A program made the translations under genes and the position numbers. From assembly GCA_904063045.1 (NCBI GenBank), contig CAJFCJ010000021.1:744001-808000 (forward strand): a stretch of DNA of 64,000 nt. Direction: 5' to 3'. Numbering within the stretch: the first letter of the stretch is position 1; each line of letters starts with the position of its first letter. Source of the stretch: Dimorphilus gyrociliatus. Its lineage: Eukaryota > Animalia > Annelida. This document shows, in pieces, positions 20,939-48,753 of the stretch. The notes beneath the pieces are model-generated. The model did not search any database and was not told where the DNA came from. It saw nothing but the letters and a program-made list of their open reading frames with translations.

Positions 20939-21221
20939 GTGATGCAGGAGAGAAAAATTCAATACTAAGCCTATGTTACTTATATTCAATTTACGAATAT
21001 TTATCTTCAACATAAATGTGCGGCTATACGAAAGCGATAGTTTACTAATTATTGACCTGGTGAATTGGTACCAAATTGGCCATTGGCGCTTGTTAATATA
21101 ATTAACAATAGAAAAGAATAAAGGATTGAATTCGTTTAGTTAATTTTTCGTTCTATTTGAGAAACGGGATAATCGTTATTTGTTGCTATTTTTTTATGAT
21201 ATCTATATTCTAAAGGAAACA

Positions 21222-23246
21222 ATGAAATTTATTCTCTTCTTGGCTATATTCATTTGCGTTGTGGGACTAATCGACACATATTGCTATCTTACGGCATGGA
21301 ATACCACTGATATAGATAAATGCAATAATAATACTGGCGTACTGGAAGCTGATTATGCCCTTTTCGGGTCTAACTTTACAACCAATTATTCATCGTTTAT
21401 TCAAGAGATAAATGTTAGATATTCCGTGATAAATTGGTGTCGATTCTCTACGTTGCTAGAATCGGTGGAATACTTAAGAATTTCTCATAGCGTTATTGAT
21501 ATTAATTGCACCGAATCCTTTAATAATCGGAACTTATCCGTCAAAAACGTCTACTTTCTAAATGTCAGCAATATTCCATCCGTTCAACAGTTTCCATTGT
21601 TAGAATCTGTAGAAATAGCTAATTGTAGTGCCAAGCTAATTGATATTAATAATGATAATTTGCTTAAAATCACTGTTTATTTAAATTCTTTTCTAAACAG
21701 TCTTCAATTGAATAACAATCCTAAGTTATCCTATTTAAATGTAACAAACAATTCTATGCTGAAAAACGTCACCGATTTGGACGGTTCAAACTTAACAGAA
21801 GTGTATTTATATAGTAATGCCCTAGAGAGGATGCCCTATTTTCGTAAATTATACTCGATAGATGTATTGGATATAAGTGACAATTATTTAATAGAATTGA
21901 CTCTATTAAACTGCCATATTGTACGTCTTTTAGCCAAAGGAAACCGATTGGAAACGGCCTCTTTCGATAGTGTTCAATTTCTTGATTTAAGTAGTAATCG
22001 TTTAAATTCTTTAATTATTCCAATTAATTTGAAGGAGGTATTTCTAAATGAAAATAATTTTCAATCTCTCGATATACGAAGTAGAGCTGACGTTGATTTG
22101 AAAGAGACGCTAATAAAGAATAACTGCGAAGAAAATTGGAGACGCATGACGAAAGTTTGCCAACCAAATCGGAAAACTCAACTGGAACGTTTGAACTTGT
22201 CATTTAATAATATTAAGAATATTTCGCTCAGATTTCTAACAGAATCTTATCCTAAACTGAAAGCCTTAAATTTGGAAGGAAACCCGATAGAGACAGTGGA
22301 GAAGGGGGAATTCCTTGTCAACGTAAGCCTATCCTCTTACAATTTACAGTGTTCGTGCAACAACTACTGGCTACTCTTTCATCCGGAAGTGGAGTTTTTT
22401 AACCGCAGTAGAACCTATTTTATGGATTTATGCGCCACTAATACGGCCGAGACTCCTTCGGTCAAAGCCGAATGTAATAAGGATTTTTGTTCGTGCTTTT
22501 CCTTGTCCCAAGCCAGTTGCGTTTTCGGAGTAGGAAAAAATTTCTCCGATAAGGATGGAAGGCTTTGGAAGAGGAAGGTTAAAATACCAAACGCCGAAGG
22601 CATTGTCTGCAATGTTGGTGGTCTCTATTATAAAAATGGTACATTCTTTATGGTAGAGAAGACTATTACGGCGAATTTAGTCAAAGAATTTACAACTTCC
22701 GCCACAACCTGGCAACCTACTGTCAATATAACTCTCAGGCCTACTTTGATAACCGAAAAATCATTAAATTGTAAAGAAATGAATAGATATACTTGTACGA
22801 TAATAATAGCATCGTTAAGTTGTATCATAGTAATAAGTACAGGAATTTATTTATCAACTTGCATCTACTATTGGAGAAGATGCAGCAAGTTGAAGAATGA
22901 GCTAATAGTGGCTCAAGAAAGAAAATTAAAACTTCGCCATAGGTTAGAATCGTTTAAATCGGCGTCTAAAAGAATAAGCTGTAGTGAATTTTTTAACGAT
23001 ATTGACGAAAATGAATCTAACGAAGATAGTAGTGAGACTTTTAAAAAATCTGTTAAAAGACATAGGACTAATTCAACAAGATCTAACTGGTACGCCGAAC
23101 GACCTTCTACTTTCGACTATAACAACGACAAAGAAATTCCCAATTCTCATACGCTAACGGGAACGTACAAGAGCCCTAAAATTTTCTTGCCCGAACAGCA
23201 TTTAGGTAACAGAGCGTTGGCGGAACAAAATTCAGTAAAACTTTAG
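21222..23246 (+). CDS. Single-exon type I membrane leucine-rich-repeat protein (Toll-like ectodomain, no TIR)
   Basis: Signal peptide MKFILFLAIFICVVGL, many LxxLxLxxNxL repeats (LDISDNYL, LDLSSNRL, LNLSFNNI, LNLEGNPI), LRRCT NLQCSCNNYWL, a second Cys cluster (ECNKDFCSC), TM IIIASLSCIIVISTGIYLSTCIYYW, and a low-complexity tail. The ATG at 21222 is preferred over the TTG start in the ORF track. Confidence 0.85.
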   Translation: MKFILFLAIFICVVGLIDTYCYLTAWNTTDIDKCNNNTGVLEADYALFGSNFTTNYSSFIQEINVRYSVINWCRFSTLLESVEYLRISHSVIDINCTESFNNRNLSVKNVYFLNVSNIPSVQQFPLLESVEIANCSAKLIDINNDNLLKITVYLNSFLNSLQLNNNPKLSYLNVTNNSMLKNVTDLDGSNLTEVYLYSNALERMPYFRKLYSIDVLDISDNYLIELTLLNCHIVRLLAKGNRLETASFDSVQFLDLSSNRLNSLIIPINLKEVFLNENNFQSLDIRSRADVDLKETLIKNNCEENWRRMTKVCQPNRKTQLERLNLSFNNIKNISLRFLTESYPKLKALNLEGNPIETVEKGEFLVNVSLSSYNLQCSCNNYWLLFHPEVEFFNRSRTYFMDLCATNTAETPSVKAECNKDFCSCFSLSQASCVFGVGKNFSDKDGRLWKRKVKIPNAEGIVCNVGGLYYKNGTFFMVEKTITANLVKEFTTSATTWQPTVNITLRPTLITEKSLNCKEMNRYTCTIIIASLSCIIVISTGIYLSTCIYYWRRCSKLKNELIVAQERKLKLRHRLESFKSASKRISCSEFFNDIDENESNEDSSETFKKSVKRHRTNSTRSNWYAERPSTFDYNNDKEIPNSHTLTGTYKSPKIFLPEQHLGNRALAEQNSVKL

Positions 23247-26882: not shown

Positions 26883-28442
26883 ATACGAATTATTAAATAT
26901 TGAATTGAATAATTATCAAAGAATACTTTTAATAGAAAATTTAATCTCCATAAATAAAGTTCAACCTGTAATAACACCTTTTAACGTATTCTTTATATAA
27001 CTATATTAGATATTAGTCCTTTATAATTTATTCAATTAATTAACCGACTATCTAACTCTTTTCCCTGCTTCGATTAACTATTCTAGGCTTCAGTTGTTAT
27101 CCTTAAAATTCAACCTTTCGTTCTACTTGTACATGGAGAAGTAGCCGAGTTGATTTATGAACTATTAACGAATCTTGGTACAAAATATTCTATTGAGGAG
27201 AACATTGATAATCTATTAAAGATACACGAAAATTATAATTCAATGGCTCCTCTTCAAAGTAACGGAACGCTTAATTTGAATCGTTATCACACCTACGATA
27301 ACATTGTTCAATGGATGTTTCAAATGAAAAGGGATCATTCGAACGATGTGAAAATAATTAAAATTGGTAAATCTTGGCAAAAGAGGTCAATTTTTACAAT
27401 AAAGATTAATAAAGGAGGTAAAATTGGTAGAAAAGCTATTTGGTTAGATGCCGGAATTCACGCTAATGAATGGATTGGACCAGCAGTAATGCTATATTTT
27501 ATAAAAGATGTACGACATTTTCTCTTATTTATGCTAGTTGTTAATTGAGGTTAATTAAGGCACAAAGACTCTCCAGAGTACAAGAAATAATATAGCTAAT
27601 ATTTTCATTTCATTTAGTCTTTCTCTTCCATAGCTTCTCACCGGTAATTCTCAAATGATAAACTTTATGACTGACAATTTCGACTGGTACATCACGCCCG
27701 TAATAAATCCAGATGGTTATAATTTCGCGTGGAAACATGACAGACTGTGGAGAAAAACTAGATCTTCTCATCCTAACAATAAATGCGTTGGTGTAGACGC
27801 CAATAGGAATTGGAATATTTTCTTTGGAGGTAATTAAACCACGTCATAAACAATATATACGGTATATATATTTATATATATATCTTTGTAACAGAGAAGC
27901 TGGATACTAAAGACGAATGTTCCAATACATACGAAGGACCATTTGCTTTTTCCGAACCGGAAGTGAAAGCTGTAGCATCATTTTTGAAAAGTAAACATGA
28001 TATTATAGCTTATTTAGCATTTCATAGTTACAGTCAGGCATGGATGATACCCTTTGCTAACAGCAAAAGTGACAAACCGAGAGATTACGACCGTTTGGTA
28101 AAGTATTTCGAAAAATATTCATATTCTATTATATAGATTACTGAATTATTTACAATAAAGATAAATATGGCTAAAGATATATCGGCAGCAGTTACGTCTA
28201 AGAATGGCGAAAAGTATACATTTGGCAGAATATCCGAATTTGCGGGAGAGGCTACAGGATCATCTGCTGATTATACTTATTTGAAATTGAATATAACGTA
28301 TTCATTTGGCGTGGAGCTGAGAGATAGAGGTTTTTATGGATTTCTCCTACCTCCTGATCAAATTTTCCCAACTGCTCAAGAAAATCTGGTTGGTCTCTAC
28401 ACACTCTCTCAACGTTTAGCATCATTAAGAAACACCTTCTAG
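26883..28442 (+). CDS. M14A zinc carboxypeptidase (CPA/CPB-like) with prodomain; signal-peptide exon unresolved. Exons ~26883-26958 (or -26967), 27087-27509, 27634-27829, 27895-28097, 28161-28442
   Basis: YHTYDNI, IGKSWQKR, WLDAGIHANEWI (HxxE), PVINPDGY, DRLWRKTRS, CVGVDANRNW, FSEPE, FHSYSQ (third Zn ligand), FGVELRDRG (catalytic Glu). Confidence 0.9.
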
Positions 28443-31261
28443 TATTGTATAAACAGTAATACGTTACCTACCAATATTATATTCTTAAAGATGATCTAAG
28501 GATGATAATATGAATACATTTGCATATATTAAAATAAATGTATAAAGTTTTATGAATTTTGTTGATTATTAAATACCCAAAATTAATCATAATGTACAAT
28601 TTGATTACATAACTTATCTAACAATTCGTATGAATAGATTAAATTAATTCTTAATAGAATATTAATTATCGACGATAGAGGAAGAGGAGATCAAGTTATT
28701 AGTATAGACGTATCTCAAGAACTTGGATTAAATAGAATTAACGAGTAAAACAAGTAGTTTAATTATTTTCTATTTTTGTCTGGACAGCAAAATTTTTATT
28801 CTCCTCTCTTTGTTCCCTTTGAAATATTGTTACTCTGTTAACGAATAATACTTGAAAATATACATCTTACCTATTACAAACTAGCCTTTAGATTCAATAG
28901 AGAAGACAATTTCCATTACTGTTCAAGTTTAAAATTATACCATGCTTTTAATTATTCAGTATTGTAAATTGGTGTGATTACCAAAATGTTTATTGTCACG
29001 CTCTGGTGGTATTTAATGGGAATCATGATTGTTGAAAATCACGATAAATCAAGGTTATGAACAACAATGCACGAATGTGTTATAAACGGATTATGATTAT
29101 ACACGTAGATTATGTAGATTGACTATTTGATATTTTCTCAATCCATTGCTCTTGATGATATAGAATAAACTATCAAAATTCTAACGCAATTTGAGTTAAT
29201 GATACAATTTAATTGCTTTAACAATAATCTACTCATTTCATTTATACTTTTTATAGGAAATTTTAGTTAAGATATTCATTGAAATCTATTAGATATACAG
29301 CACATATATACGCGAATAAACCTTCTATAAATAACTCTTTACCATAGTCATGATTTTTGCTAAAATGAAAGAAAATGTCCAATAATGAAACCAAGTGTAA
29401 AGTAATTGTCGAGAAATCATTTCGTATTATTGTAATCTTTATTAAAAGTGGAAATTTTGTTGACTTTCGATTTCTAGTGATTTCACTTTGTAGAAGAATT
29501 CTTCTTCCAATACATTTCATTTATAATTTCTATAGATTTCTGGGATTAATAGTTTTATATTATCTCTATATATACAAATAATTAATGAAAACGTCCTCTT
29601 TGACAGTTATTATTGAATATATTGCCTTAAAAACATGTAAAAAAGAACTCTAAAGAGAACAGTAGAACTCGTAGGTAATTGTTTGTTTTTGGCTAAAAAC
29701 AAAATCATTGTCAGATAAAAGCACCAAACAGATAATTAATCATTTTCAAGTCTTTTTACTGTTAGTGGTAGCTTCTCTTCTTCATTATTTGTTGTTTGTA
29801 CAGATCGTATTCATAATTAAAAGCCTATAGCGAAACTTGCTAGTTTTTTTGATTCACCGTCTTGCCGTTGTAATAACTTGAATATTTAGTCAGAATTGGA
29901 AACTTCTTCCTCTAATACTACTCTACACTATCAGTTGAGATTGAGATGATTTATTATGGAAATTTTTCCAATAATCTACTCATTTTTCGTTGAAGGTATC
30001 ACTTTGTTATAAGGACAATGATGAATTTCATAATCCAGTATATTTTCATAAAGAACCTTTCGAAAACGATTTTATTCATATGGAAAATATTTGATAAGTT
30101 CATACAAATCGAATTGTTCAACAATAATCCTTCTTTAACTGTTTGAATTGTTAGTATTTCATTAATTTATGCAAATTAATTAGCCAATGGTGAATTTTTT
30201 CAAGCTATATCAATCCACACCAAAATTTGAATATTTTTTAAAATTATTCATCTTTCTTAAAGAATAAATAAATAAGAAAGTAGAATTGTAAGAGAGATTA
30301 ACAATTTCGTAATCTTTTCTAGAGGAGAATATCCATTGTCTGTTTTACATATATCGAGTTTTTACAAAGAGATTTCAATGTCATAACCAGATATTGAAAA
30401 TCCATTAAATCCAAATATGTCTTTAAACTTTTGTTAAAATTTGCATATAATATTTAAATTGTAATATAAAAAAAGCCAACGGGATATCTTTATTATAATA
30501 GCTGATTAAAATGTGACTGATTGTGCACCAAGTGACCAACTGTACTACAAATGAAAATTAAATATCTGCAAATATTAGAATAAAATTACTGTTTGAAACA
30601 GCGGTTGGTTAAGGATTATGTTAAAAGCGTTGTTTTTTCAATTATTGTACAACTGTAATAAATTAACTCGTGAAATTTGAAAAAAGGGTAAAGAGGGATA
30701 GATAGATAAAGAAGTAAAATCTATACTTAATGAGCTTTCAATACCTTTTCTTTCAATTCTTTTCTATTCTTAAGAAAAGAAGGCGTTGGAAACCATAAAT
30801 AGTTTTATTCCTTATATATCAAAGTTTTATAAATAAAGTTACGAAAGGTTTTGAACGGTTAATGAACGGGAGAAATATTTTCTTTTAATTATCTATACAA
30901 AAAAAATGGAGGCTATTAAAGTAAGAACAAAAATTCATAAATCAGGTCAAAATGGACTAGGCGACTTTTTAAAAAATTACTTTCCAGTGTTAAATCTATT
31001 ACGTTATCAAAATACGACAAATAGTAGCTACTTCATCATTTTTAATAGTAAATAATAGTTTGTACTTTTAATGTACTTTCACAACAGATGTTAAAGTATT
31101 GTTTAAATATTTTGTTAAGTTCGCTTGAACTCATTTTATGCACTGCGTCTAGTACGCAAAAATGAAAGATAAGAGCGATAACATATTTCAATATAAGCTT
31201 TATGTTAAATTCAACTGTTATATATTCTTTCGTAGCTGTTAACAAGTTGAAAGCAACGAAT

Positions 31262-32844
31262 ATGCATATAATATTTCGATTTATTATATTATTTATTAAA
31301 TGTCTTATGGACATTATTGGGGATATCTTTTATTATTTTGGTCTCAAGTTATCCCCTTTAACATTTGAAAATATCTCGAAAGAGTTGACTAAGGAAGCTC
31401 GTTCGGAATTGTTACAAGTTGAATATCTACAAGACAATTTAGACGTTTTTATTCGGACAATTGCCGATGGGAATACTATGCCTGTTACTGGAAGATATTT
31501 TACTAAAGTATGGCTTATCCATCTACTAGAGTTGCGTGTTAGAATTAAAAGATGCCTTAAGGAAGATCCATCTATTTATCGGGTTCCTTTAAAAAGACCA
31601 ATATTCTTTGTGACTATGATGCGAACTGGTAGTACTTTTATGCATTGCCTAATGGCTGAGGATGACCAATGGAGTTGTCCAAAATTATGGGAATTGGAAG
31701 ATTTCTCTCCTCCACCAGGCACTACGGCTGCCGACGATAAAACTAGAATAGCCAGATGCCAGCTAAAATGGGGTAAGTTCTAAACAAATACTATAGTTTA
31801 TAATGATCAATTCATGATTTCTTAAATATGTTTCTTTTAGAAATTACGTCCACTTTGATGGGTTGGAATGATGTTAAAAAAGCTCATGGATTCAATCCTC
31901 TTACACCGGAAGATCTTCTTTTCCTTTATCATTTAGATTTCAAATTTGTAAGTAGTACATACGGAAATTTCATTCAAAAATTTACAATTTACTATTAAAA
32001 GATAAATAATGCTTTATCAACAAAATTAATGATAAAGATAAATGATAAATTTAATACGACATATTGTCTTTTACTAACTAATTAACTAACTAATTAATTG
32101 ATTAATTAACTAATAATCTAATCCGTTGTAGATAACGGCAATGCACGACAGAATGGAAGGAGAGTTTATGGACTTTTTCCAAAATCAACCAGCAAATTTA
32201 GAGTTAATTTATAATAAAAATTTAAAAACTCATTTGCAAATGATATGCAAAAATAAAGGTTTGTATATTAATTAATTAATTAACTATTTAACTTATTAAC
32301 CAAAATTTAATTTTTCTTTTTAGATATGGAAAATAAAAGATTGTTAACAATGCTTCACGCTTCACCAGCTCATTTGGAGTCCCTTTTGCAAGTGTTTCCC
32401 GATGCTCAAATTATAACTCTTCACAGGGATCCAGTTGGTGTTATGAAATCTGTTTGCGATCTCATTCACACAAACTCTAGAACTTGTAGAAGGTTATTTG
32501 TCGATAATAAAAAGGGCGTTGGTAGACGTCTTTTAAAATCTTTAACAAATGATAGTAAAAACTTGGTAAAATGGAGGAAAGATCAAAATCTTGAAGGAAA
32601 AGGAATTCAAAGATTTATCGATGTTAATTTTAAAGATCTAATAAAGAATCCAATAGAAACTGTCCAATCCGTCTATAAACAATTGGGTACAACATTAGAC
32701 GATAACTCTTATAAAAAGATGGCAGCATTCTTAAATTCTCACAAGAAGTCTTCTTCAAAAGCATTCGATATTCAAGATTTTGGTCTTACGAAAGAAACAA
32801 TTAGGGAAAGTTTCAAAGAGTACACTGACTACTTTAAAGTTTAA
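31262..32844 (+). CDS. Sulfotransferase copy 1 (Sulfotransfer_3 / bacterial-type family). Exons 31262-31772, 31841-31947, 32132-32258, 32324-32844
   Basis: 5'-PSB loop RPIFFVTMMRTGST, CPKLWELE, and 3'-PB motif FPDAQIITLHRDPVGVMKS (R...S spaced by 8). The start Met was chosen from alignment with copies 2 and 3. Splice phases are 1,0,1. Confidence 0.88.
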
Positions 32845-34147
32845 AAAACAAGAGACGTTCAGAAAATGATATTAAATCATTATGATTCATATGCAATAGT
32901 CGTTGCATTGTACATATCTATGTATACATATATATATATATACCTTTCTTTTATTAATCATATGCTAATTTATTCAGAAATATACTTTTTCAAAGTTGCA
33001 TTTATCTTTTATTTTTGAAAAGATCTCCTGCTTGTTGAAATATTCCATTCTCTCCTAAATAAGGATGAATAATTTAAAAAAATCTAATCTAATATAATCT
33101 AATTTACAATAAAGATTATATAATCTCAAATCTCGTGCCAATCTCTCTCTTAAGGTTAAGAATCTTGTTGGTACAGTTGGATACTAACAATAAAATATGT
33201 TCTTCCATAAAAGAACGAAGAATTATAAGATTAATTGTACAAATGTCCCTCTTCAAGAATAGTCCAAGAATACAATGAACAACACCTAGGAAAAAGAAAA
33301 AGATAAACAAAAGTTAAACGATCTTACGTAGCGCAATTCTTACTAATTAATTAATTAATTGTCAAGTATAAAATGAGTTGATAGATATTTTTGTTATGGA
33401 TTATGATAAATAGAAGGATCAGTGTTAGGTTAATATATCAATTGTTATATAATAATTTAAAGTAAAATAGTAAAAACCTTTCGAAAGAATGAAAGTTAAA
33501 AAGTTTAATATTGAAAATATCAGTTTAAATGCTAAAATAGATAGCGATATAATGATGTAATTAATTAGTATAATAACATAATTACAACATTAATTTATTT
33601 ATTTTAACTTTAAGATAGTCACTTTTTTTTATTATTAAAACCTAACCCAATTTTAATGAAATGTTATTGAAAAGATTTTCGTATTATAATTAATTATTAA
33701 AATTGGGTGTGTTTTTTTTTATTGGATATTTCTTCGTATATATAACTATGATGGCGCAAATAAAATTTTGCTGTGGTGCAGTGTTAGATTCATTATTATT
33801 AACTTTTTCAATGTGTATTACGACACTATTATCTTTTAATGCAAAGTAGATATATATACTGTACAACTGTTTTTACTTTCTATCGAAAAGAACAATTAAT
33901 TGAGGAAGAACAGTTCTTCAAATAAATCAAGGAAGATAACTTCAAAGTGTGTATTATGATTGCAAATAGAAATAATTGAGCGAATAGCTTTTAAACTTTT
34001 ATTTATTAAAGTTTGACAAGTTTCCTATTAGTTTAGAATTTCCTTCCATTTCTACAGGAAATCTTTTCAACTTATATTTACAGTAATATAACATCCTCTT
34101 GTGGATCTCTCTGTCATTACTACTATTACTACTACTTGCAAGACGCT

Positions 34148-35164
34148 ATGAATAATCATACGGATCTCTTTAATGCCACATTAGAACCGGAAGCAAGTGG
34201 AAGAAGTTACCTTGATTTAATCGCTTCTAGATTATTTTCCTATACGATATTTCTGGCTTGCACTTCGGTGGGTATACCTTTGAATATTCTATCGATAGTC
34301 GTCATTCGTAAGGGACGACTATGGAATATAACACTTTTTCGATATTTGGCTTCTGTATCATTCGGAGATATCTTCGTGGCTCTAAGTTATACATTCAGGG
34401 CGATTGTTCTAGTCGATTCAGAGAACATAACTCTACTCGCCAACAACATCATCAATTGTCGACTGGCGCCTTTCTTTTACGTTACATTTGCACAACTCTC
34501 TTCGTTCAATCTCGTCGCCGTCACATTTGACCGATATCTATGCGTTGCTCATCCTACCAAAGCAAAGGTTTGGTCGACGATTGGAATTTGTAATAAGGTT
34601 ATCGCCTGCGTTTTTACCTATTCACTCGCCACTGCCATATTCATTCCCATTGTTCAAGACAATAGCGTCCGTCTGTCTCCTACCAGAGTCGAGTGCATGC
34701 CAAAGAACGATGGAGGAATATTCCTTTACAAGTATTTTCTGCAGTACGTTTCGTCCGTCTGCTCCTATATTCCATCCATCATCTTGGCGATTCTCAACGT
34801 GCTCATAGTCGTCAGTCTGAGAAGACACACGAAAGAGAGTGACATGGTTAAAGAGAATAGTAAGGACGAGAAACTGAGGAATGCAACAAGAAGACTAACA
34901 ATTTTGAATCTATTCATTTCAACAAGCTTTATCATCCTTACTTTTCCGTTATGCTGCTTTAGCATATACGTTCGCCTCTTCTCCAAGAATTTCAACACAA
35001 ACTCCCAAGAGAAACTCATCTACGAAGTGGTTTACGTCTTGAACGCGATGAATAGTGTTATTAATTTCTTTGTTTACTGTTTCTGCGGAAGAATGTTCAG
35101 GAACGAGCTATTGAGTATATGTTCTCATACTGAGAGGAAAAGCTCTAGTTTAAGTAATTCGTAA
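34148..35164 (+). CDS. Intronless class A orphan GPCR 1 (FMRFamide-receptor-like / lophotrochozoan-expanded type)
   Basis: Seven hydrophobic segments: PLNILS (TM1), DIFV (TM2), FDRYLCV (DRY), ECL2 Cys (VEC), FIILTFP (TM6), NSVINFFVYCFCGRMFR (TM7/H8). First ATG is at 34148. Confidence 0.92.
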   Translation: MNNHTDLFNATLEPEASGRSYLDLIASRLFSYTIFLACTSVGIPLNILSIVVIRKGRLWNITLFRYLASVSFGDIFVALSYTFRAIVLVDSENITLLANNIINCRLAPFFYVTFAQLSSFNLVAVTFDRYLCVAHPTKAKVWSTIGICNKVIACVFTYSLATAIFIPIVQDNSVRLSPTRVECMPKNDGGIFLYKYFLQYVSSVCSYIPSIILAILNVLIVVSLRRHTKESDMVKENSKDEKLRNATRRLTILNLFISTSFIILTFPLCCFSIYVRLFSKNFNTNSQEKLIYEVVYVLNAMNSVINFFVYCFCGRMFRNELLSICSHTERKSSSLSNS

Positions 35165-36646
35165 GCGAGATGGAAAATTTTTTTAAATAACATTAGTAGA
35201 CTAGACCAGAAAAAAACCTCTATTCTGTCCCCCATCTTCCTCCTCTGCCCTTCTAATTTGACTTGGGCACAACTTTTAACTAATTAAAAAAGTAGTGAAA
35301 ACTATATTTTGTAAATTCAATAGAGGCAAGGTACAGAAAAGAAAGAAAGAAAGAAAGGTAGGGAGAAAGAGGAAATCCCTTTGAAAAGATTATTACAAAG
35401 TAGACATAATAGAAAAGTAGAAAAATAGTTTTCTCTTCTTTAGTAATTGCAATTTGTGAAAGAAAAACTAGTTTTTACTTTTTTCTTTATTGTATTAATA
35501 ATAATTATTTATATGTTTTATGTCAGCCTAGCTGATATGTAAATCTGTTAGGGTATCATTTTTGTAGGTGTAGTAGTTCAATATTTACTACTTGTGTATA
35601 TGTTGGCAGTGCAATGCAAGAAACAATAGCATACTTTCAACCTCAGAATCTAGTTGAGATGGCGATAGTAGTTGCTGTTAATACACAAACAACTCTTACA
35701 GGATATATAACTGATGAGGTATCAGAAATTTTGAGGGTATCGACTAAATAATCTAAGCGTTAGTTATCATCTTTCACAAAGATCTCCAATAATACTCTTT
35801 CACTAATTATTCTTGTTTAAGGGGATAGAATAGAATTTTTGTCGTTATGTTGTTGTTGTTGGGCTATTAAACCCATGTACAATGTGTTGGATTACACAAA
35901 ACATTAATACAATGTACGAAAGTCTGAACCGACTAATTCTTACATTTTATAAATTGCAGAAGTAGTAAAGTAAACTAGTGTTGATTAACCTTCTTAATAT
36001 ATAACTTTCATAAGGATCATCTTTTAATGATCTCAATTATTGTTAGTTGGATTTGAGGTGTCGAACGTGTCTTTAATACGATTCAAATTCTGTTTACGTT
36101 CCTGAGAGCAAATTAATAGCGATCCTTTTATATATTAGGATTATTTTAAATAGTAAAAAGATATAAAGATGTACTATACTAATCAACTGGATAAAAAAGA
36201 TATCAGCGTGACAAAATGAATAGTCCTCATACGCCAATTTAACTCTTCTAATCTTTTTAAATAGCATCTCTAAATCTTTCTAGTATGTTTTTGGTTAACG
36301 AAAAATATTATATTATACAAAAAGTATCTGTTGGTCTTACAACAATTAATAATTTTAGTATCAAGAACTTTTGGCGTCCAACGCTCTCTATGATAATAAA
36401 AATAGTACCTTTCAGGAATATGAAATTATGACGCGATTACCAGGAAAACGGTAATTTGAAAAGAGTATTTTATCAAAGAAGAGCAGGAAGAGAAGAAGAT
36501 GATATTTTTCCTTCTAATATAGACTCTACGATCAAATATCTTTATTATTTAAGTTTTTGTTTATCTTGTTATAACGTGAAGAGAAACTCTGGCTGTTAGC
36601 GATTCGGGACGTCTCGTTTGATAGGCATTCTCTTAAAGGTATTCAA

Positions 36647-37633
36647 ATGAATTATACAAACTCTACAACGACAAATTTATCATCGAATGGTAAAGAAACA
36701 TACTTCTCTTTACCCGCGCCCAGGTTGTTCTCGTATGTAATTCTACCTGTGGCTATCCTGTTTGGAATACCTCTAAATATCCTCTCGTTCCTGGTTATGG
36801 TTAGAACAAACCTGCGAAAGATTACTCTCTTCCGATATCTTACTTCTGTGACAACTGCAGACTTTTTCGTGATTGTCAGTTGTATTTTAAGAGGAATGGT
36901 TTTCGTTGACATTGAAAACGTTTCGTTAAAAATGTTCAATGTCATTTATTGTAGATTATTTTCATTTTTCTACGTTACCTTTGTACAAGTATCATCGCTT
37001 AGTCTTGTGGCGGTAACTTTTGATCGTTATTTGTGTATTGTATATCCAACAAAAGCGAAAATATGGTCAACTATAAACATCTGTAACAAAGTGATTATAT
37101 CTATAGTTGTATATTCAATTGGAGCTGATGTCTTTATTCTCGTTGTTCAAGATAATAGCGTTAGATTATCTCCGGTAAGACTTGAATGTCTACCTCAGAA
37201 TCCCGGTGGAAAATTCTTATATAAATATCATTTAGCACTATCATCAATAGTTTATTCATTTTTACCATCACTTGTACTAATAACCTTGAATGTATTGATA
37301 GTAAGAAACCTTAAAATATATAGAGATAGTTTTAAAACACCTAGACAAACCGGTAAATATGAAGGAATATTTAAAAGTGTTACTAGACGATTAACAATTT
37401 TAAATTTAATTATTTCAACTAGTTTTATTGTGCTTACTTTACCTTTAACATCGTTCAATATCTATGCTCGTTCATTCTCTAAAGATTACTATTCAAACAA
37501 ACAAGAAAAGTATCTTTTTGAAGGTTTCTTTATGCTTAATGTAATTAATCACATTATTAACTTTTTCCTTTATTCATTCTGTGGGAAAATGTTTAGGAGA
37601 GAGTTACTTTATCTTTTGTCGTGTAGTAAGTAG
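36647..37633 (+). CDS. Intronless class A orphan GPCR 2, close paralog of GPCR 1
   Basis: FDRYLCIVYPTKAKIWST, VQDNSVRLSPVRLECLP, NHIINFFLYSFCGKMFR. Confidence 0.92.
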   Translation: MNYTNSTTTNLSSNGKETYFSLPAPRLFSYVILPVAILFGIPLNILSFLVMVRTNLRKITLFRYLTSVTTADFFVIVSCILRGMVFVDIENVSLKMFNVIYCRLFSFFYVTFVQVSSLSLVAVTFDRYLCIVYPTKAKIWSTINICNKVIISIVVYSIGADVFILVVQDNSVRLSPVRLECLPQNPGGKFLYKYHLALSSIVYSFLPSLVLITLNVLIVRNLKIYRDSFKTPRQTGKYEGIFKSVTRRLTILNLIISTSFIVLTLPLTSFNIYARSFSKDYYSNKQEKYLFEGFFMLNVINHIINFFLYSFCGKMFRRELLYLLSCSK

Positions 37634-38357
37634 CTGTATTCCATTTTGTCTCGTCTTTGTGCGAAACTATACGAGGAATAAAGAAACTAATTAAAACGAT
37701 ACTAGTAATATTTACCTAATAATTACATAGTTAGTTTGTTTTGACCTTTGTAGCCAAATCCTTAGGTGTCTATACTTGAAATGTCGATGGAAACCTTGAA
37801 TAATAAACCTTATTTACCGATAATATCTCTCTCTCTCTTTCTCTTCATCCATCCATCTATCTTTTCTATTAGTTTACTTTTCGGGGATAGTTCCAACCTA
37901 TTTATATATAATAAAGTCAAACTGTACTTTGATCTAGCTCCTCTGAAAAATCGAATGATATGATTGCAAAGCAATAAGCCACTAAACAAGATAAGTAATT
38001 AAATTTTACTAGTTAAAGAGAAACACCTAAGGTATTTATTAATTAAAAGACTTCTTTACATTTATAAAATGGACAAATATGCTGAAAATAAGTAAACAAC
38101 ATAGATAGAACATACCAATCGGCATAGTCAACTACAATATAGACAGAGAGATGAACTGATATTTTGTAAAATATAGTTGATGGAAGCAATTAAAAAAGAC
38201 ATTGAGACTGATGAAAAATGAGCATTGCGCAATTGAAAATAAATGAATAAATGAACAAATTAATATTGCTAGCCTGTGTATTTTCATAATTGTTTCCATT
38301 AAATAGGATCTTACGCACTACATTTAAACGGTTACTTGTTTTTAATATATTCCTTCT

Positions 38358-39437
38358 TTAAGTCACAATTGTATCGTTAGTTATAGTCCCCTTTTGCAGA
38401 CTTGGACACTCTCCCCCTCCCCCTCCTCCTTCCCTTCCTTCTCCTTCTCCTCTTCGTTTTCTTATCGAAGGGCAATTAGAAAATAGACGAAACATTTCAT
38501 TTCTAAACGTTTTACCACACAAACAGTAGAATAAAAAATTTAAAGTATGATTTAAACTATTGAATGATGTTAATAATTCTAAAAGTAGTTTATTCACCTT
38601 TGAAGCGTAAAAGTTTGGATCAAATAGCCTTACGTATATACTTGTTATGCAAACGGGAAATGTTAAAATTATAAAGCTTGTCGACACTAAAAGTATCAAT
38701 AAAGTTGACTTTTTTGCTATTTTCTTTATCTTTTTATCTCTGATGCTATTTTCTATTTTAGCTACATCTTTACTATGACATTTAATCTTATATAACATTA
38801 ATATATTAAATATCGCCATTGTAATAGATGGTAAAAGAGAATACATAACGTTCTGAATTGTTAAATATGTTTGGTAGAAAAACTCTCTTGCCAATAGATT
38901 CTTTGGTAAACACTCAATCCTCGCTAACGATATTCTTTTAGCTTGTGTGTGAATGACTGGGGAGAATAAATCAATAATTATTACAGTACTAAAAATACAA
39001 ATAACTACTTTATTACAGATTGATAAAGTAGATAAGACTTTTACTTTTGTAGGAAAAGCAACGCATATAAAACGATCTATAGTTACGGCGACTAAACAAT
39101 ACGATGAAGTTTGAGAGAATGTAATAAGTACGTAGATTGATATTTTGCAATACAACCAAAGATAGACGTCAGTCGATACAACTTCACTAGCAAAGAATAA
39201 TCCTCCTCTGACTGCGTATGCAAATACAACCAATAGGTCTGATATAGAAACTCCAGCAATATATCTAAATAAACTTGATTTCCATAACGAGCTTCTTACT
39301 ATTGTAATGATTGAAATTACATTGAAAGGTATGCCAAAAACTACTGCAATTGGAAAAAAAAAAAAAGGGAACACTCTTGCTCCAAGCCATGAAATTAATC
39401 CTCCATCATCGTTCGTACTATTTGTCAAATTCATCAT
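38358..39437 (-). CDS. Intronless class A orphan GPCR 3, same family, opposite strand
   Basis: PFNVIS, IDRFICVAFPTKVKVLST, RIECLP, FIILTFP, NHTLNFLFYCLCGKTFR. Confidence 0.92.
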   Translation of the reverse strand: MMNLTNSTNDDGGLISWLGARVFPFFFFPIAVVFGIPFNVISIITIVRSSLWKSSLFRYIAGVSISDLLVVFAYAVRGGLFFASEVVSTDVYLWLYCKISIYVLITFSQTSSYCLVAVTIDRFICVAFPTKVKVLSTLSICNKVVICIFSTVIIIDLFSPVIHTQAKRISLARIECLPKNLLAREFFYQTYLTIQNVMYSLLPSITMAIFNILMLYKIKCHSKDVAKIENSIRDKKIKKIAKKSTLLILLVSTSFIILTFPVCITSIYVRLFDPNFYASKVNKLLLELLTSFNSLNHTLNFLFYCLCGKTFRNEMFRLFSNCPSIRKRRGEGEGREGGGGGGECPSLQKGTITNDTIVT

Positions 39438-40659
39438 TTTAAAACTATAATATACGCAAACTCTCCAGCTCCCTCTTCTGACTCCAACTTTTGTTTACGA
39501 ACTAATTTTCAAATACTACTCATTAAACTATCCAGTATCTCTTTAGAAATCGGTCCAAGTACAAATTACTCTTCCTCTCTCCCCTCTCTCTCTCTCCATT
39601 TCTATTATATATACAGTATGTATACTCTAATTTATTCATGCATCTATAATTTTTCTTCATAATGCCATTCCGGGAAAATTGACTTTTATCAAACTTGAAA
39701 ATTAACGCCGTCTTTAAATCGAAATAAGATTTACGGTTTTTTGTAATAAAAGACATGGAGAAAATAATCTAGAAGCAATTAAATCTAGGTAACTTCTTTC
39801 CTCATTACCATCAAAAGAACCATTGCATAAGAATTCATTTAAAAGATCTTCTGTACTGTTATCCATAAAAAAGAGAATTGTTATAGTTTTTCATTCAAAG
39901 TGTAAATGTTGTCTTGTAGTACATGCTTACTTTTGTTGAAGGATATACTAGGTAACACTAATTACACTGCTAATAACTGGTTTCATATACTTCATTCATA
40001 TACATAATTATAGTTTTTTTGGTAATGTATTAGTGTTATATATTCTCTTTTTCGTCAGAGTTAAAGTAGGAATGTTAAGTATTTTATCGTGTAATTTCTA
40101 ATTAGTACAACAATTAAAAAGTAGGTATCTCTTTTCCTAATTCTTCGTATCAGTTATTATACTGATTTGTAACTTTTCGACAAAGTTTTACCTTACTTCT
40201 AGATGTCGTTAGCTGTTTGATTAATTCTAATGCTATGAATAATAATTTTACATTACATTAGAGAAGCTTACTTTTTCCAATATTGAATTTATGAATAAAT
40301 TAGTTAGGTTACTATCCAAAGTATAAGGTAACGTCAATACTATTAAATAGATACGATATTTGATAGATCGTATAAATGAGCTACAAGTATTTTCAACATA
40401 TTGCTATATAATTGCTTATGAAAAGAAAACAGTATGATAAGAATATTCGCAGCGTAGTATATATTAGATTATATACAGTAAATGTCTAAAATATCCGGAC
40501 ACCGTAAAGTTTGATAGGCCTTTATAAAAAAAGATTTTTTTTGCTTGTTGTTTAGCAATGAAATGTTGGGTGAAACTCGGATCTATATATAAATTTCTAT
40601 CAAATAGTATTTAGATAAGTTTTTACTTCATTTTTTTTTGTTTTTCTATTGTTTATTTT

Positions 40660-40960
40660 TTTAAGAGTTTTCTTCTTATTTGGCCATAAGTCATATTATT
40701 CCGGACAATGGTTTGGGGACCAAAAGTTGTATCATTTCTGAATTTGACAACCCTCTTTTTCAATGCACTTACTCTTCCCTGCAATCACCCTTTCCTTGTT
40801 TCTTTTAAGCCTCTTCATGATCCTACTCATTCCTGCTATATCTCTTTCTGTGAGACTCTTAGGACAACCTCTATTCTCTTGTCTGAGTGGCTTATATTTT
40901 AAAATATCGTTTACTGTAGATGGTGCCATTTCCTTAATTTTCTATAATTGTGGATTATTA
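40660..40960 (-). mobile_element. Degenerate Tc1/mariner transposase N-terminal (HTH) fragment
   Basis: ORF 40732-40929 reads PSTVNDILK...RGCPKSLTERDIAGMSRIMK, resembling the Tc1 pattern STVxxI...RxGRPxxLTxRDxRxIxRxxK. No DDE domain or terminal inverted repeats were seen. Confidence 0.4.
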
Positions 40961-42297
40961 GATTCCTAACCTCTTTACTCCATACCATAATTAAATAAAT
41001 GATATAAAAATTGTATAATGTAGGTAAAATGGATAATAAGTAACAAAATAATAAATTTAAAACTTATGGCGTCCGGATGTTTTAGACCTTTACTTTATCC
41101 TATATTGAACAGCTCTTGAACTAAATGGAATCGTTAGTAGACTAATTGAAAATGACAAACTTATACATTTATACAGTGCCTGTAGTTTATTTTTGAAATT
41201 TTCTTTTCAACTTGAACCTTTTTGTCTTGAAATATAAATATAGATTCTTTTAGTATCTCTTTTGCTAGATGTCGCTACTGGCGATGATTTACCGTTTATT
41301 GACATCTTTGAAAAGAAAACACTTGATAAGAGTTTAAAACATAAACAAAAGAAGTAATATTTTTTCCAAATTCTAGTTCAAAACACTGTTCAAATTTCAC
41401 ACAAATACGGGAAGTAAGCTATAGTAACTTTTATCAATTCAAATTCTTGTTTTTATTATTGCGTTTGTTTTGTATTGATTTTAATAGAATTGAATGAAGT
41501 ATAGTATATATATACAGTATATATTAAATTGAATTATACATGCTACTTTCGCTTTCGTCTTTTCGACGCAAATGAAACATTACACTCTTACCGTAATTGA
41601 ACGATGAAGTAAGCAACGAAAAGAGCTATTTTCAAACATATAGGCTGACTGCCGAATAGACTAGCATGTTAGATTGCTTATAAAGCTTATGATAAATGTT
41701 AGGCTGATAGAGTAATCATAGCGCTCTTTCCAGTCTGTGTGCAATTACTGAATATTCTAAACGCGATAATAGTTTGAACGCTTCTCCTCCTAAACAAGAT
41801 AAATAGCACTGATTTCAAATCATATATTAAATTCTTGAAGGAGATCATTTTGATTAGAAAGTAAGCCTATTCCAATTCTTCCTAAATGATATCATCATCA
41901 CAGATACATTGAACAATCATTGACCTTTGCTTGAATGATTATTATTATTAAAAAAATATAAGATATTATCAGTTTTTTTAAGTTAACCGTGTAAAATAGT
42001 CAATATGCTCTTTTAATTGTTAAAGGTGTGAATTGTATCCTTACGAAAACCTTATCTTGACAATTTATCTGTAATTCTTTCCGCCGCTTGTCTAAGACTA
42101 CTTCCGATTAATCAGGCCTATACTAATACAAGTTTTCAGCATATATACTGTAGATAATGGTTAATTATATATTTTGAATACTGAAATAAACAAATTATGA
42201 AATTAACAAATAAGAGAAAAATAGGTTCATATTGTTTTATAGAGAACGCGAATAAAAATAAATAGACAAACAAACAAATATTTAGCTGTTCAAAATT

Positions 42298-43717
42298 TTA
42301 TACTTGAAAGAAATCCGTATAAAACTTCATAGATTCTTGAATTTTCTCTTCAGATAGACCGTATTCTTTTAAATTATACTTTGATTTTCCGGTCTTTTTC
42401 TCATAATTATCTAAGTATACTTTCATCTTTTCTTTACTGCTGTTCGTCAAAGTCATATCTAAATCTTTATATAAATCTTCAACAACTTTCATTGGAGTTT
42501 TAATTAGATCTTTAAATTGTATATCAATAAATCTCTTGAATTCGTCAGTTTTAAATTGGTTACTCTTTCGCCAATTGACCAATTTTTTACCGTCCTCTGT
42601 CGCTCCTTTCAATACTCTTCTACCAAATCCAACTCTATCGTTATTGAAATGTCTACGACAGGATCTCGACATTACTCTAACAAGTTCGCAAGCAGATTTT
42701 ATCTGACCAACAGGATCTCTGTGTATCGTGATAAACTGAGCGTCGGGGAATGCTTTTATCAAAGATTCCAGATTAACTGGAGTGACGTGATGCATGGTAA
42801 GAAGTCTCCTTCTATCCATATCTATTTAATGGAACGGAGGGAAAGTTACTTTTAATATCAATGAATTTGAATGAAAAGTAGAATTACTTACTTGCATTCT
42901 TACAAATCATCTGTAGACGTAGTTTTAAGTTTTCGTCATAAAGATCGCTATTCTTCTTAGAGGGATTGCTGAAATACTTTGTAAATTCTCCTTCCATACC
43001 TTCGTGAATTAGGTTTGATACGATAAAATTGAAATCGGAATAAATATTAAATATTAAATCTTCGGGATTATGCGGATCGAGAGAATGGTATTTTTTAATG
43101 TCGTTCCAACCCATAAGCACTGATGATACATCTATTAATCGTTTATAAATATTTATTATTAATACCTTGTATTATTATATAAAAGCAAACTACGCAAAAT
43201 ATTTACCCCATTTGAATTTGCAATAGGCTATTCTTCTCTTATCTTCTTCCGCATTATCTCCTGGTGAAGGAGCGCAATCTTCAAGTTCCCACAGCTCGGG
43301 GCATTTCCAATTTTCGTCTTGATTCATCAAATGATGAAGAAATGTACTTCCTGTTCTTATAAGAGTCAAAATGAAGACTGGCCTCTTAATTGGTACTTGA
43401 CTGACTGTCGGATCCATTTTCAAGTATTTCTTTACTCTAACGTGCAATTCCATAAGTTGAGTAAGCCATACTCTAAGAAAGTATTGTCCAGAGAGAGGAA
43501 TAATATTATTTGCAGTAGAGTTTTCAATAAATACTAAACAATTGTTTCTAAGATAATCAGTTTGGAGAAATTCTGATTTGGCTTCCTTAGATAAAGAACT
43601 GCAAATTCCTTCAAAAGTTAATGGTGTCAATTTCAAGCCAAATTTCCCAACTAAATCTCCAATAAAATCAATAAAAACTTTCAAACAGAGTATAATAAAA
43701 CGAAATATGATATTCAT
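42298..43717 (-). CDS. Sulfotransferase copy 2. Exons 43207-43717, 42892-43131, 42298-42821
   Basis: RPVFILTLIRTGST, CPELWELE, FPDAQFITIHRDPVGQIKS. GT-AG junctions with phases 1,1. Confidence 0.9.
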
Positions 43718-46150
43718 TTTCTTTTTCCTTTACTTTCCTTCTTCTTTCTCTCTTTTTCAACTTTCTTTCTAACTTTCTTTTCAGTTTGAACTAAGAGAAA
43801 CGATTGCCTTTTATTCTCTTGCCTCTTCTTTGACTTTTCTTTACTCTTCTAACTGTTTTTCGCACTTACATTCATATATATATAGGAAAATATTCTCAAA
43901 AAGTTTTCATTGGCTAATTAATAGAGGTCATGCCGTGCTCATAGTACTTTATCTATTTAATAGTTTTTCTTTATTATATCTTTAATTATCCTAAGAAGGC
44001 TAGGACGTTCTAATCTGTTAACCTCTTATATTAGTAGTACTGTGTAGCGGATGGATTAATAAATGAACACATATATACTGTATATATACAATATATTAAT
44101 ATTGTATAAAATGAATACTAACATGTACGTGTATATTCTGTATGTTATTTCCAAGTTTAGAAATTTAGTAGGTTCTTAATTTCATACATAAACTATGTAG
44201 TTTCATTTTTTACGATTCAATCTTCCTCTCACTCTGCCCCATCGCCTTTCCTCTCCCCCTCCTCCCTCCCTCCCTCCCTCCATATCTCTGTCTCTCCGTC
44301 TTTCTATGCCTAAAATATATATATTAAAAATTAACGCTTATTTTCATTTTCACGTATCTTAATCCTACGAAATTATTTACATAAATTTTGAAAGTTTTAT
44401 CAAACTTACAATCAATTATATCAAAATTTAAGTAAATAACTTACTGTAAGATGTCACTTTGAACCTTTAATTTTTATCAAAAATCTCTTAATTAAACTTA
44501 AAAGTACATATCAGAGGTGAACGAATGAATAATTTATGAAAATATATTTTTTTTAAAAAAAAACTTTTTTCTCTTTTCATTTAACTTTTCTTTCATTAGA
44601 AAAGGGTTAGATATTTATTCAATCGATATACCGAGTATAAGGAGGATACTATACGCACGGTGATTATTTTATTATTAGCATTATTAGGGAATTTTTCTAC
44701 ATTTTCTTGTAGGCTAATTAAATAGAAGTAACTAATTAGTAATTAATTAATTAATATGTTAATATGTTAATAACAACTTAAAGAAACAGATTTACAATTA
44801 TTTCGATCTTTTTTCACTTTTACTCATTTTACGTATTCGTAAACAAGGGAAAGATATACTTGTATATATTTACTAAGAGCGTCTCTTTTCCTTAAAACGC
44901 TTAATAATAAATTAATAATTAAAAGGATATAAAAGTATCACTTGCTGACTAGCTGTTACTGACCTCTTTCAATGTTAGAAAGAGTGTAAAGGTCAAAAAG
45001 AATAAAAGAAAAAAAATACTCTATTAGCATAATATTAAGCCTCATTTCTTGAAATGCTCTCAAAATCAATTGTTATGTTCTTTTATGGAAAATCAACAAT
45101 GTAATCTTCTCTTTGTGTTTCTACTAGTCAAAATAATAAAAACAATCTAAGTAATACATTGACTGAACGAAAAGCAAAATATCTCCAGCCTATATTTACA
45201 TTCATCTCAAGAGCGAAGAGCCAGACAGATTAGCTAAGGTAAAAGTTTTATGATTAGTGTTCCAGTCAGTTTTACGTTACATACTGTATATTACGATATC
45301 ATCATTATAAAACAATCTTCCGTCATATCTCTCATACTAAAAGAGATAGTCACAAGAAGCAATATCTAGACTACTGTCTCTCTTAGTACTAGATCTCTTC
45401 CTTTTCTATCCTAGTATGGGATATTTAAAGTGAATATATATTTTATGCTAATTATAAATTAGTACTCTATTAGAATCTTAAAAATTTCATTTGCATTTCC
45501 ATATTCTTCAATCTCCTCAAACTTAATGATTCATTGATATAATAAATAAATGTCTACATAATAATTCATTCATCCGTTTATAAATCTATTTATTTCACTT
45601 ACCTTGAGCATATGAAGTCTAGCCTTTAAAATTTTTGTTCAAAACCAAAAGAATGTTCCAAATAAGAAATAATCTTATCAGTAATAGGTTGTTGCGTTGA
45701 AAAGCATCTCCCTTAACAGTTAGTACCAAAATCAAAAATGATAAACCGTATCAAAACACAGTCTAGGCTTATATTTATATAATTATAAACAAAGAAATAT
45801 ATAAACAAACTAAATTCCATTGCAAGTTCACTGTTGTGTATTTTTTATCTTATTATAAAGTATCACAAAGCGCTAATCTCTTATCCCATAAAGAAATCCT
45901 CTTCAGATATTTTTCTATTTCTGAAACTCAACTTTCACTTATTAAATTCAACAGATTTTTCTGTTGAAATCAGAAATATCCTAATAAAAATTTGACGAGC
46001 CTCTTTTAGTGTTTTAAAAGGTAAACTTTTAAAACAATTCTATTAACAAGAATACCCGAGAGAATATGATAATTATACTGTACATAGAATACATAAATAA
46101 CCATATAATTCTAATAATTAAACAATTACATACAATACAAGAAACAATAT

Positions 46151-47548
46151 TTATAATTTAACATTGAAATAGTCTATATAATACTTTAGAGAATCTCTCA
46201 CATAATCTTCAGTTAATCCGTAATCGAACAATTTCGATACTTTAGTATTCTTTGTTGATTTTGTGTGATCGTTTAAAAAGTTCAGCATATTCACTTTTGC
46301 TTCTTGATCTAATGTCATATCCAGTTTTTTGTAAATGTACTCTACTGTACCGATTGGATCTTCAATTAAATCTTTAAATTGAACGTCGATAAACCTTTCG
46401 AAATCTTTGGCTTGCAATTTTGGATCTTCCCTCCATTTAATCATTCTTTTAGTATCTCTTAAAACGGCTTTGAACACTCTTCTTCCATAACCAACATTGT
46501 CGCTTGCAAAGATTCTTTTCGTCGACTGTGTATTTACTTTAATCAATTCGCAAGCCGATTTAATTTGATTCGCCGGATCTCTGTGCAAGGTAATTATTTG
46601 AGCATCTGGAAATGTTTCCAATAAGCTTTCCATATGAACTGGAAAAGTGTGTATCATCGTTAAAAGTCGTCTCCTTTCCATATCTGTTCAAGAGATTTTG
46701 TATTTTTATTAATTAAAATAGGATTCCTTTTTTTTAACGTACCAGAATTTCTGCAGATCATTTGGAGCCGAGTTTTCAGATTGCGATCGTAAATATTTTG
46801 AAGAGACTCCTTCGGATTACAAACGAAATCCATATAAACACCTTCGACGTATTCATGCATTAGTGCTGTTTGAACCATAGCGAAATCGGTATGGTATAAA
46901 ATTAATAAATCTTCAGGGTTTCTTGCATTAAATTTATGTACTTTATTAATATCGTTCCAACCCATTAGGACCGATGTTATATCTGTTTAAAATTAATAAC
47001 CGTTAGAATTTAGATACTTTCGTATTTTCACTCGTTTTCTTACCCCATTTTAGGGCGCTTTTCTTAATTCTTCTCTCGTCATCGAAGCCACCCGGTGGTG
47101 GGGCGCAATCTTCTAATTCCCATAATTCGGGACATCTCCACTTTTTATCTTGAGACATAAGATGATGAAGGTGAGTACTTCCCGTTCTCCATAGAGTAAC
47201 AAAAAACACTGGACGACGGAAAGGAACTCTATAAATTGAAGGATCCTCCTTAAGACATCTATTAATTCTTACTCTCATTTCTAAAAGATTCGTAGCCCAG
47301 ATTTTAAAAAAGAACTGAGCGCTTAAAGGAACACGATTTCCCGCCGTAAAATATTTTGTAAACATTTTTAAATTGTCTTGAACATAGACTGCCTTCATTA
47401 ATTCAGTTTTAGCGGGTTTAGAGAGACTTCTAACCAAACTATCATAGCTGAGAAGAGAAACTTTTAATCCGAATGCGTGGAAAATATCCCCAATTAAATC
47501 AACTATAAATTTTAGCGATAATATCAAAAATCTTAATAAGATGTTCAT
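46151..47548 (-). CDS. Sulfotransferase copy 3. Exons 47044-47548, 46743-46982, 46151-46683
   Basis: RPVFFVTLWRTGST, CPELWELE, FPDAQIITLHRDPANQIKS. The 240-nt middle exon has the same length as in copy 2. Confidence 0.9.
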
Positions 47549-48291: not shown

Positions 48292-48753
48292 TTATTTCTT
48301 TATTGGAAGACTTTTTTTAATAATATTCAATAGATTTTCAACTTCGTTATCCGTTAATCTCTCTTCGCATTCTTCAATTAATAGTTGAATTTCTACTTGA
48401 CTTGTAGGTCTCAGATTGAGAATTTGCAATTTTTCGCATTTAGTCAAATTAAACTTGTCAATTTTCTGAGAAAATCGTAAATATTAGACATTTTCTTTCG
48501 TAGTTATTATATTAATTCTTTATTATATTCCATTAATAGATCTTACCTTTAAAAATTTATTTATCATTTCATTCGTTTGGTGAATTATTGGGGTTTGTTC
48601 CAAAAATTTTATACTTGTATAACAAACGGACGACAAGTTCTTTTGTTTAGCGGATGGCTTCTTCTGACCATTAGAGCCATTTTGAATATCGTTTAAATGA
48701 TTTAAAACTTCGTAATTGCTAACGAAACTTGAGTTTCCATCGAGAACTTCCAT
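48292..48753 (-). CDS. CRCP: RNA polymerase III subunit RPC9 / CGRP receptor component. Exons 48547-48753, 48292-48465
   Basis: MEVLDGNSSFVSNYEV, QKNLSSVCY, LTKCEKLQILNLRPTSQVEIQLLIEECEERLT match CRCP/RPC9. Confidence 0.92.

Follow-up and report, generated by a model that had tools for sequence, protein, structure and literature searches.

Enzyme-receptor and metabolic (operon-like functional) gene clusters are rare in animals. In spiralians and nematodes, intronless class A Srw-like G protein-coupled receptors (GPCRs), which are candidate chemoreceptors or peptide receptors, occur in tandem arrays specific to individual lineages. A locus of the annelid Dimorphilus gyrociliatus that combines features of both was analysed here. 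It contains three sulfotransferase genes (SULT1, SULT2 and SULT3) and three GPCR genes (GPCR1, GPCR2 and GPCR3), and lies in a stretch of 64,000 nucleotides (the window) at positions 744001-808000 of contig CAJFCJ010000021.1 (C21), from an assembly of 77.9 Mb in 349 contigs. Positions without a contig name are those of the window. The locus resembles enzyme-receptor clusters in that enzyme and receptor genes lie close together in same-strand order, but differs from them in that SULT1 and GPCR1 are not co-transcribed and in that the pairing shows neither recurrence nor congruent co-duplication. GPCR1-3 share with the receptor arrays a single coding exon, tandem and inverted copies, pseudogenes or relics, and fast divergence. 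Our analysis suggests, with a probability of roughly 0.65, that the locus consists of two interleaved arrays of lineage-specific families, which were inherited and rearranged and have been expanding independently.

An open reading frame (ORF) scan identified, from left to right across 31262-47548, SULT1 (31262..32844, +), GPCR1 (34148..35164, +), GPCR2 (36647..37633, +), GPCR3 (38358..39437, -), SULT2 (42298..43717, -) and SULT3 (46151..47548, -). The class A GPCR genes (7tm_1/Srw) each have one coding exon and are enclosed by the three multi-exon Stf-type Sulfotransfer_3 genes. An earlier sequence-only reading of the window had described these six genes in a mirror-symmetric layout, each arm consisting of a SULT gene co-oriented with the adjoining GPCR gene. 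All positions and strands, including the co-orientation in each arm, were reproduced by the ORF scan, and the gene identities were borne out by Pfam matches above the cut-offs; the paralogy within both families was also read correctly. The same reading had explained the layout by an ancestral SULT+GPCR unit that underwent an inverted duplication, followed by tandem duplications giving GPCR1/2 and SULT2/3. The mirror-like layout and the co-orientation at both boundaries are consistent with such a history, which we nevertheless consider unlikely. Comparison of the arms for inverted similarity detected none in non-coding DNA, which argues against it; the arms were alike at the coding level only, at up to 71%, apart from a 39-nt match to a GPCR relic described below. 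A recent inverted segmental duplication was ruled out on the same grounds.

Gene trees and approximately unbiased (AU) tests of alternative topologies also argue against the duplicated unit. In the GPCR tree, one clade comprised GPCR1, GPCR2, an unlinked pair (one gene on contig C95, the other on C153) and genes from two further species; genes from outside the window are therefore nested inside GPCR1/2. GPCR3 had an unresolved placement among dispersed paralogs and was not resolved as the sister of GPCR1/2. An exclusive clade of the three window GPCRs was rejected (p 0.00175), but GPCR3 together with the whole GPCR1/2 clade was not (p 0.24). The exon-wise SULT trees were nearly star-shaped, and SULT2 grouped weakly with C21_890a, away from SULT3. 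An exclusive clade of the three window SULTs was rejected on exon 3 (p 0.0165) and was borderline on exon 1 (p 0.088), but a sister relationship of SULT2 and SULT3 was not rejected (p 0.33 and 0.13). Orthologous SULT pairs in the trees were 890a/rel229_a, 892b/rel229_b and SULT3/rel231. Besides the two topologies left unrejected by the AU tests, the three coding exons common to SULT2 and SULT3 fit the duplicated unit, but the extra intron of SULT1 is also present in an unlinked gene on C25. As reconstructed, the trees do not call for the duplication of a SULT+GPCR unit and lend it no support either, and each family has also duplicated on its own. Thus the congruence of the two gene trees, to which the sequence-only reading had looked, was not recovered, since window-only clades were rejected or unsupported in both families.

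Linkage in related species, which the sequence-only reading had likewise raised, was found in one dinophilid relative, but not at three SULT loci, two of Owenia fusiformis and one of Lingula anatina, where no 7tm_1 gene lies within 10 kb. In the relative, which was represented by Logan contigs of SRR23372228, SRR23372229 and SRR23372231, the SULT1 ortholog (on L032) has the same four exons as SULT1 and 68-74% identity to it, the SULT3 ortholog (on L022) has 81-84% identity, and the GPCR3 ortholog G3' (on L034) has 54-55% identity and is likewise convergent with a GPCR gene. Contigs L034 and L037 share an overlap of 1858 nt (100% identity) and give the composite order SULT2'> GPCR-psi> Gy> Gx> <G3'. 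The SULT2' fragment is 70% identical to exon 3 of SULT2 and 48-51% identical to SULT1 and SULT3. GPCR-psi (L037:1013-1743) is spread over three frames and clusters with the C95/C153 genes and with P0001, from a second relative (ERR142247xx), within the GPCR1 clade; Gx is sister to that clade, and G3' is sister to GPCR3. No overlap was found between L032, which carries SULT1', and L035, which extends the upstream side of G3'. Another GPCR copy of the relative, at L020:6631-7029, contains in-frame stops; the broken copies on L020 and L037 are either pseudogenes or errors of short-read contigs.

D. gyrociliatus and its relative therefore have in common the SULT-GPCR linkage and the convergent GPCR pair, but the orientation of the GPCR block relative to SULT2 is opposite in the two species. 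An inversion in one of the two lineages would explain this difference. Orthologs of the two species show a synonymous divergence (dS) of about 1 or above, i.e. saturation, and nonsynonymous divergence (dN) is 0.11-0.21 for the SULT genes and 0.38 for GPCR3. These values, together with the broken copies, point to purifying selection on the SULTs and to fast evolution of the GPCRs with gene birth and death. On the relative's contig L021, which carries the paralogous locus and was compared with C21:885001-905000 of D. gyrociliatus, the SULT genes are arranged S> S> <S, with no GPCR. Two of the L021 genes are orthologous to the C21:890 kb pair, and D. gyrociliatus lacks a counterpart of the third, inverted one (rel229_c) at C21:890-905 kb.

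A relic of the N-terminus of a GPCR1-clade gene, with 36 homologous codons, was identified at 39714..39866 (-), between GPCR3 and SULT2. It is 55% identical to GPCR1 over 40 amino acids (E 8.5e-10; blastp-short, small database) and has no Pfam match, and 39 nt within it, at 39760-39798, are 95% complementary to 34201-34239 (+) in the 5' coding part of GPCR1. The relic shares its strand with SULT2, and its position corresponds to that of GPCR-psi in the relative; it may be the remnant of a decayed GPCR or the footprint of an inversion breakpoint. Immediately next to SULT2 on the same strand, both species accordingly have a GPCR1-clade gene or relic, and not GPCR3, which shows that the GPCR clades are not split by arm and speaks further against the duplication of a SULT+GPCR unit.

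The sequence-only reading had further proposed that an enzyme and its receptor are kept together by function. In the version considered here, the locus would be a dinophilid-specific module in which sulfation creates or silences a small-molecule or peptide cue sensed by the neighbouring GPCRs, for example for mate, cocoon or sibling recognition, and in which selection has kept the linkage through inversion and receptor turnover. Both the module and such a cue appear improbable, even more so than the duplicated unit. In their favour, neither an inversion nor the turnover of GPCRs has dissolved the linkage in two species whose dS is saturated, transcripts of both SULT1 and GPCR1 are present, and the motifs of the SULTs that bind 3'-phosphoadenosine 5'-phosphosulfate (PAPS) are conserved. 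On the other hand, the GPCR beside SULT2 has decayed in both species, the SULT and GPCR families evolve under very different regimes, and a full-text literature search found no described SULT-GPCR cluster that could serve as a precedent.

The distribution of the two families in the genome also argues against a functional module, because the pairing is not recurrent. The genome contains about 16 Sulfotransfer_3 loci and several hundred class A GPCRs, with at least 156 matches above the 7tm_1 cut-off; the GPCR hit lists are lower bounds because 147 of the 1132 first-look candidates were scored. Beyond the window, the SULT subfamily comprises three genes at two loci, two genes in tandem at C21:890-893 kb and a single one at C25:973 kb, and none of the three has a GPCR within 10 kb or more. 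Conversely, no SULT lies within 4-10 kb of the nine nearest GPCR paralogs (on C95, C153, C65, C75, C106, C5 (two genes), C6 and C64). The further pairs that the sequence-only reading had envisaged were thus absent from both sets. In the lower-bound hit lists, no other Sulfotransfer_3 locus has a listed GPCR closer than 22 kb. Gene density in D. gyrociliatus is about 209 genes per Mb (PMC7854359). By a rough estimate, 0.3-0.6 abutments of a SULT locus and a GPCR locus are expected genome-wide by chance, and both boundary pairs would be co-oriented by chance in about 1 case in 4. On these figures, one abutting SULT-GPCR pair is estimated to be about as many as chance would produce.

Transcript evidence came from run X1, the sole run containing this stretch, as one whole-run assembly. 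The X1 contigs skip GT..AG introns, which indicates that the run is RNA-derived. SULT1 is represented by one contig of 1382 nt (31246-32910), with GT..AG introns of 68, 184 and 65 nt and four coding exons. Transcript contigs of GPCR1 span 34037-35874, and one low-depth contig joins 33946 to 34037 across a 90-nt GT..AG intron (33947..34036, +) in the 5' untranslated region (5'UTR). GPCR2 is represented by a single weak contig (36875-37083). Depth is zero at 33000-33199 and 33400-33599, between SULT1 and GPCR1, showing that these two genes form separate transcripts, both expressed in run X1. This agrees with the published report that D. gyrociliatus lacks operons and trans-splicing (PMC7854359), and both the separate transcripts and that report count against a functional module. 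An operon or read-through was ruled out by the zero depth between the two genes, by the 5'UTR exon of GPCR1's own and by the reported lack of operons.

Two further low-depth X1 contigs stop at 33360 and 33640 and continue for 255 and 111 letters outside the window; their continuations had no match within the window. These loose ends could be chimeric contigs or could reflect splicing to distant exons.

The mirror arrangement might also have been produced by an assembly artefact or misjoin, which is very improbable. The RNA-derived contigs match SULT1 and GPCR1 without differing letters, and independent assemblies of the relative show the same convergent GPCR pair with a SULT beside the array. 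The one observation that comes near to such an explanation is that close GPCR paralogs are indeed carried by small unplaced contigs, at C95:121231-122157 (L007) and C153:16830-17804 (L009), with a tree path of about 0.2 between them. Within D. gyrociliatus, no genes are closer to the frameshifted GPCR beside SULT2' of the related species than these copies, which could be haplotigs or the result of a recent duplication.

Taken as two interleaved arrays, the locus would, on the simplest history, have begun as a convergent SULT array (S> <S <S); GPCR-free arrays with an inverted member occur in the relative (L021) and in Owenia, where the L038 array is arranged <S S> S> and is GPCR-free within 10 kb. 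A GPCR gene would then have arrived in the central gap of the SULT array and multiplied there, and the resulting neighbourhood would be older than the split from the related dinophilid. Later remodelling may have included the inversion of the GPCR block in one lineage and the decay of the GPCR beside SULT2, with each gene being transcribed independently. The order of these events, like the absence of a functional link, is inferred.

Several points weigh against this explanation. SULT genes flank the GPCR block at either end, each pointing the same way as the GPCR adjacent to it, and the SULT-GPCR adjacency persists in a relative with saturated synonymous sites; this persistence fits selected linkage as well as it fits plain inherited synteny. 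The expression data consist of one assembly at whole-run resolution, in which SULT1, GPCR1 and GPCR2 were seen. GPCR proximity at the 13 more distant SULT loci was judged from the lower-bound hit lists alone, and the chance estimate given above is rough because the genome searches scored 147 of the 1132 GPCR candidates.

The exon models of the SULT genes were built with an intronless paralog (L010) as template, against which the SULTs divide into pieces at about residues 1-181, 183-252 and 254-425. Protein searches were run exon by exon, and exons were joined solely for the frame check. The coding exons of SULT1, for which an RNA-derived contig and Pfam and PDB matches are available, lie at about 31262-31771, 31840-31947, 32132-32256 and 32322-32844, with joints ambiguous by 1-2 nt, and amount to 1266 nt in frame. 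The SULT2 and SULT3 models are based on homology and frame, with Pfam matches for both as well. SULT2 has predicted coding exons at about 43717-43207, 43131-42892 and 42821-42298, separated by GT..AG introns of 75 and 70 nt, and SULT3 at about 47548-47044, 46982-46743 and 46683-46151, separated by GT..AG introns of 61 and 59 nt. The exon structure claimed by the sequence-only reading to be common to SULT2 and SULT3 was therefore correct, each gene having three coding exons. Upstream of SULT3, a weak tblastn match to SULT exon 2 at 48307..48465 (-) (34% identity over 56 amino acids, E 0.005, small database) may mark the relic of a fourth SULT.

The last exons of the three SULTs matched Sulfotransfer_3 (PF13469) with 58.4, 49.1 and 61.5 bits (cut-off 27), and their first exons gave weaker Pfam matches in the P-loop; neither the SULTs nor GPCR1 had an NCBIfam match. 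Two mycobacterial Stf-type proteins, 2zq5 and 2z6v, are collinear with the SULT exons over about 400 residues (E 1e-12 to 1e-14). Both are labelled 'putative uncharacterized protein' in the PDB copy used; we take 2zq5 to be Stf1 of Mycobacterium tuberculosis and 2z6v to be Stf9 of M. avium. A full-text literature search yielded nothing on either entry. The motif RTGST, the 5'-phosphosulfate-binding loop, is present in the first exons of all three SULTs and aligned with RTGTT of 2zq5, and the C-terminal HR...S of the SULTs aligns with HR of 2zq5 in the 3'-phosphate-binding region. Among 11 subfamily sequences, the RTGST P-loop and the HR...S region are invariant, including H33, R34, K41 and S42. 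These matches identify the three SULTs as members of the Stf-type PAPS-dependent Sulfotransfer_3 family, with predicted activity, and we infer that the proteins are soluble and cytosolic. To our knowledge, no substrate is known for any animal Stf-type sulfotransferase.

In contrast to the mycobacterial proteins, the D. gyrociliatus SULTs are animal genes with two to three spliceosomal introns. A profile of SULT exon 3 matched 4894 library proteins at E <=0.001 and just three at E <=1e-30, among them a protein of the relative and a D. gyrociliatus paralog. Next among the animal matches came genes of Owenia fusiformis and Lingula anatina with several exons, and these homologs place the SULTs in a spiralian family that is old and bears introns, with a subfamily specific to dinophilids. 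A recent bacterial transfer was considered and is unsupported in view of the same multi-exon homologs; the nearest Atlas clusters of the SULTs are bacterial, which does not in itself show a transfer.

The three GPCRs matched Pfam 7tm_1 with 83.4 (GPCR1), 73.6 (GPCR2) and 60.3 bits (GPCR3), above the cut-off of 30.5, over profile positions 2-260 of 260, and all three also matched 7TM_GPCR_Srw (GPCR3 at 50 bits). The open frame of GPCR1 starts at 34136, with the first ATG at 34148. GPCR1 and GPCR2 are 53% identical, and the motif VQDNSVRLSP.R.EC.P, which the sequence-only reading had noted in both, is present in the ORF translations. The description of the three GPCRs as intronless holds for their coding sequences only, because GPCR1 carries the 5'UTR intron. 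At the end of transmembrane helix 3 (TM3), GPCR1 and GPCR2 have F-D-R-Y and GPCR3 has the conservative variant I-D-R-F. The NPxxY motif of TM7 was found in none of the three, in each of which the proline is replaced to give N-F-(F/L)-x-Y; the profile matches still place the proteins in 7tm_1, which makes the altered motif a variant feature. The C-terminal tail of GPCR3 is rich in Gly and Glu. The closest named relatives of the GPCRs are rotifer and mollusc proteins (25-27% identity), and the best matches of solved structure, all of them weak, are opioid, psychosine, cholecystokinin A (CCK-A) and nociceptin receptors (E 1e-6 to 1e-7); GPCR1-3 differ from deorphanised receptors in having no orthology to any of them.

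The flanking genes, all on the forward strand, encode a ZMIZ-type MIZ-finger protein (12374-13900), a cytochrome P450 (18132-19574), which lies about 12 kb from SULT1, a leucine-rich repeat (LRR) membrane protein (21180-23246), an M14 zinc carboxypeptidase (27150-28442) and, on the other side of the locus, an ARM/HEAT-repeat protein (59665-60687).

If the linkage were functional, the locus would count among the rare cases in animals in which an enzyme and the receptor of its ligand are inherited as one block. A family of spiralian GPCRs could then be deorphanised directly through it, and a substrate of animal Stf-type sulfotransferases could be found in the same way. On present evidence, the locus mainly demonstrates the way in which two families that expand in tandem can become interleaved and reshuffled in a very gene-dense genome, and it also indicates that the sulfotransferase family is old and intron-bearing in spiralians and is no recent import from bacteria.

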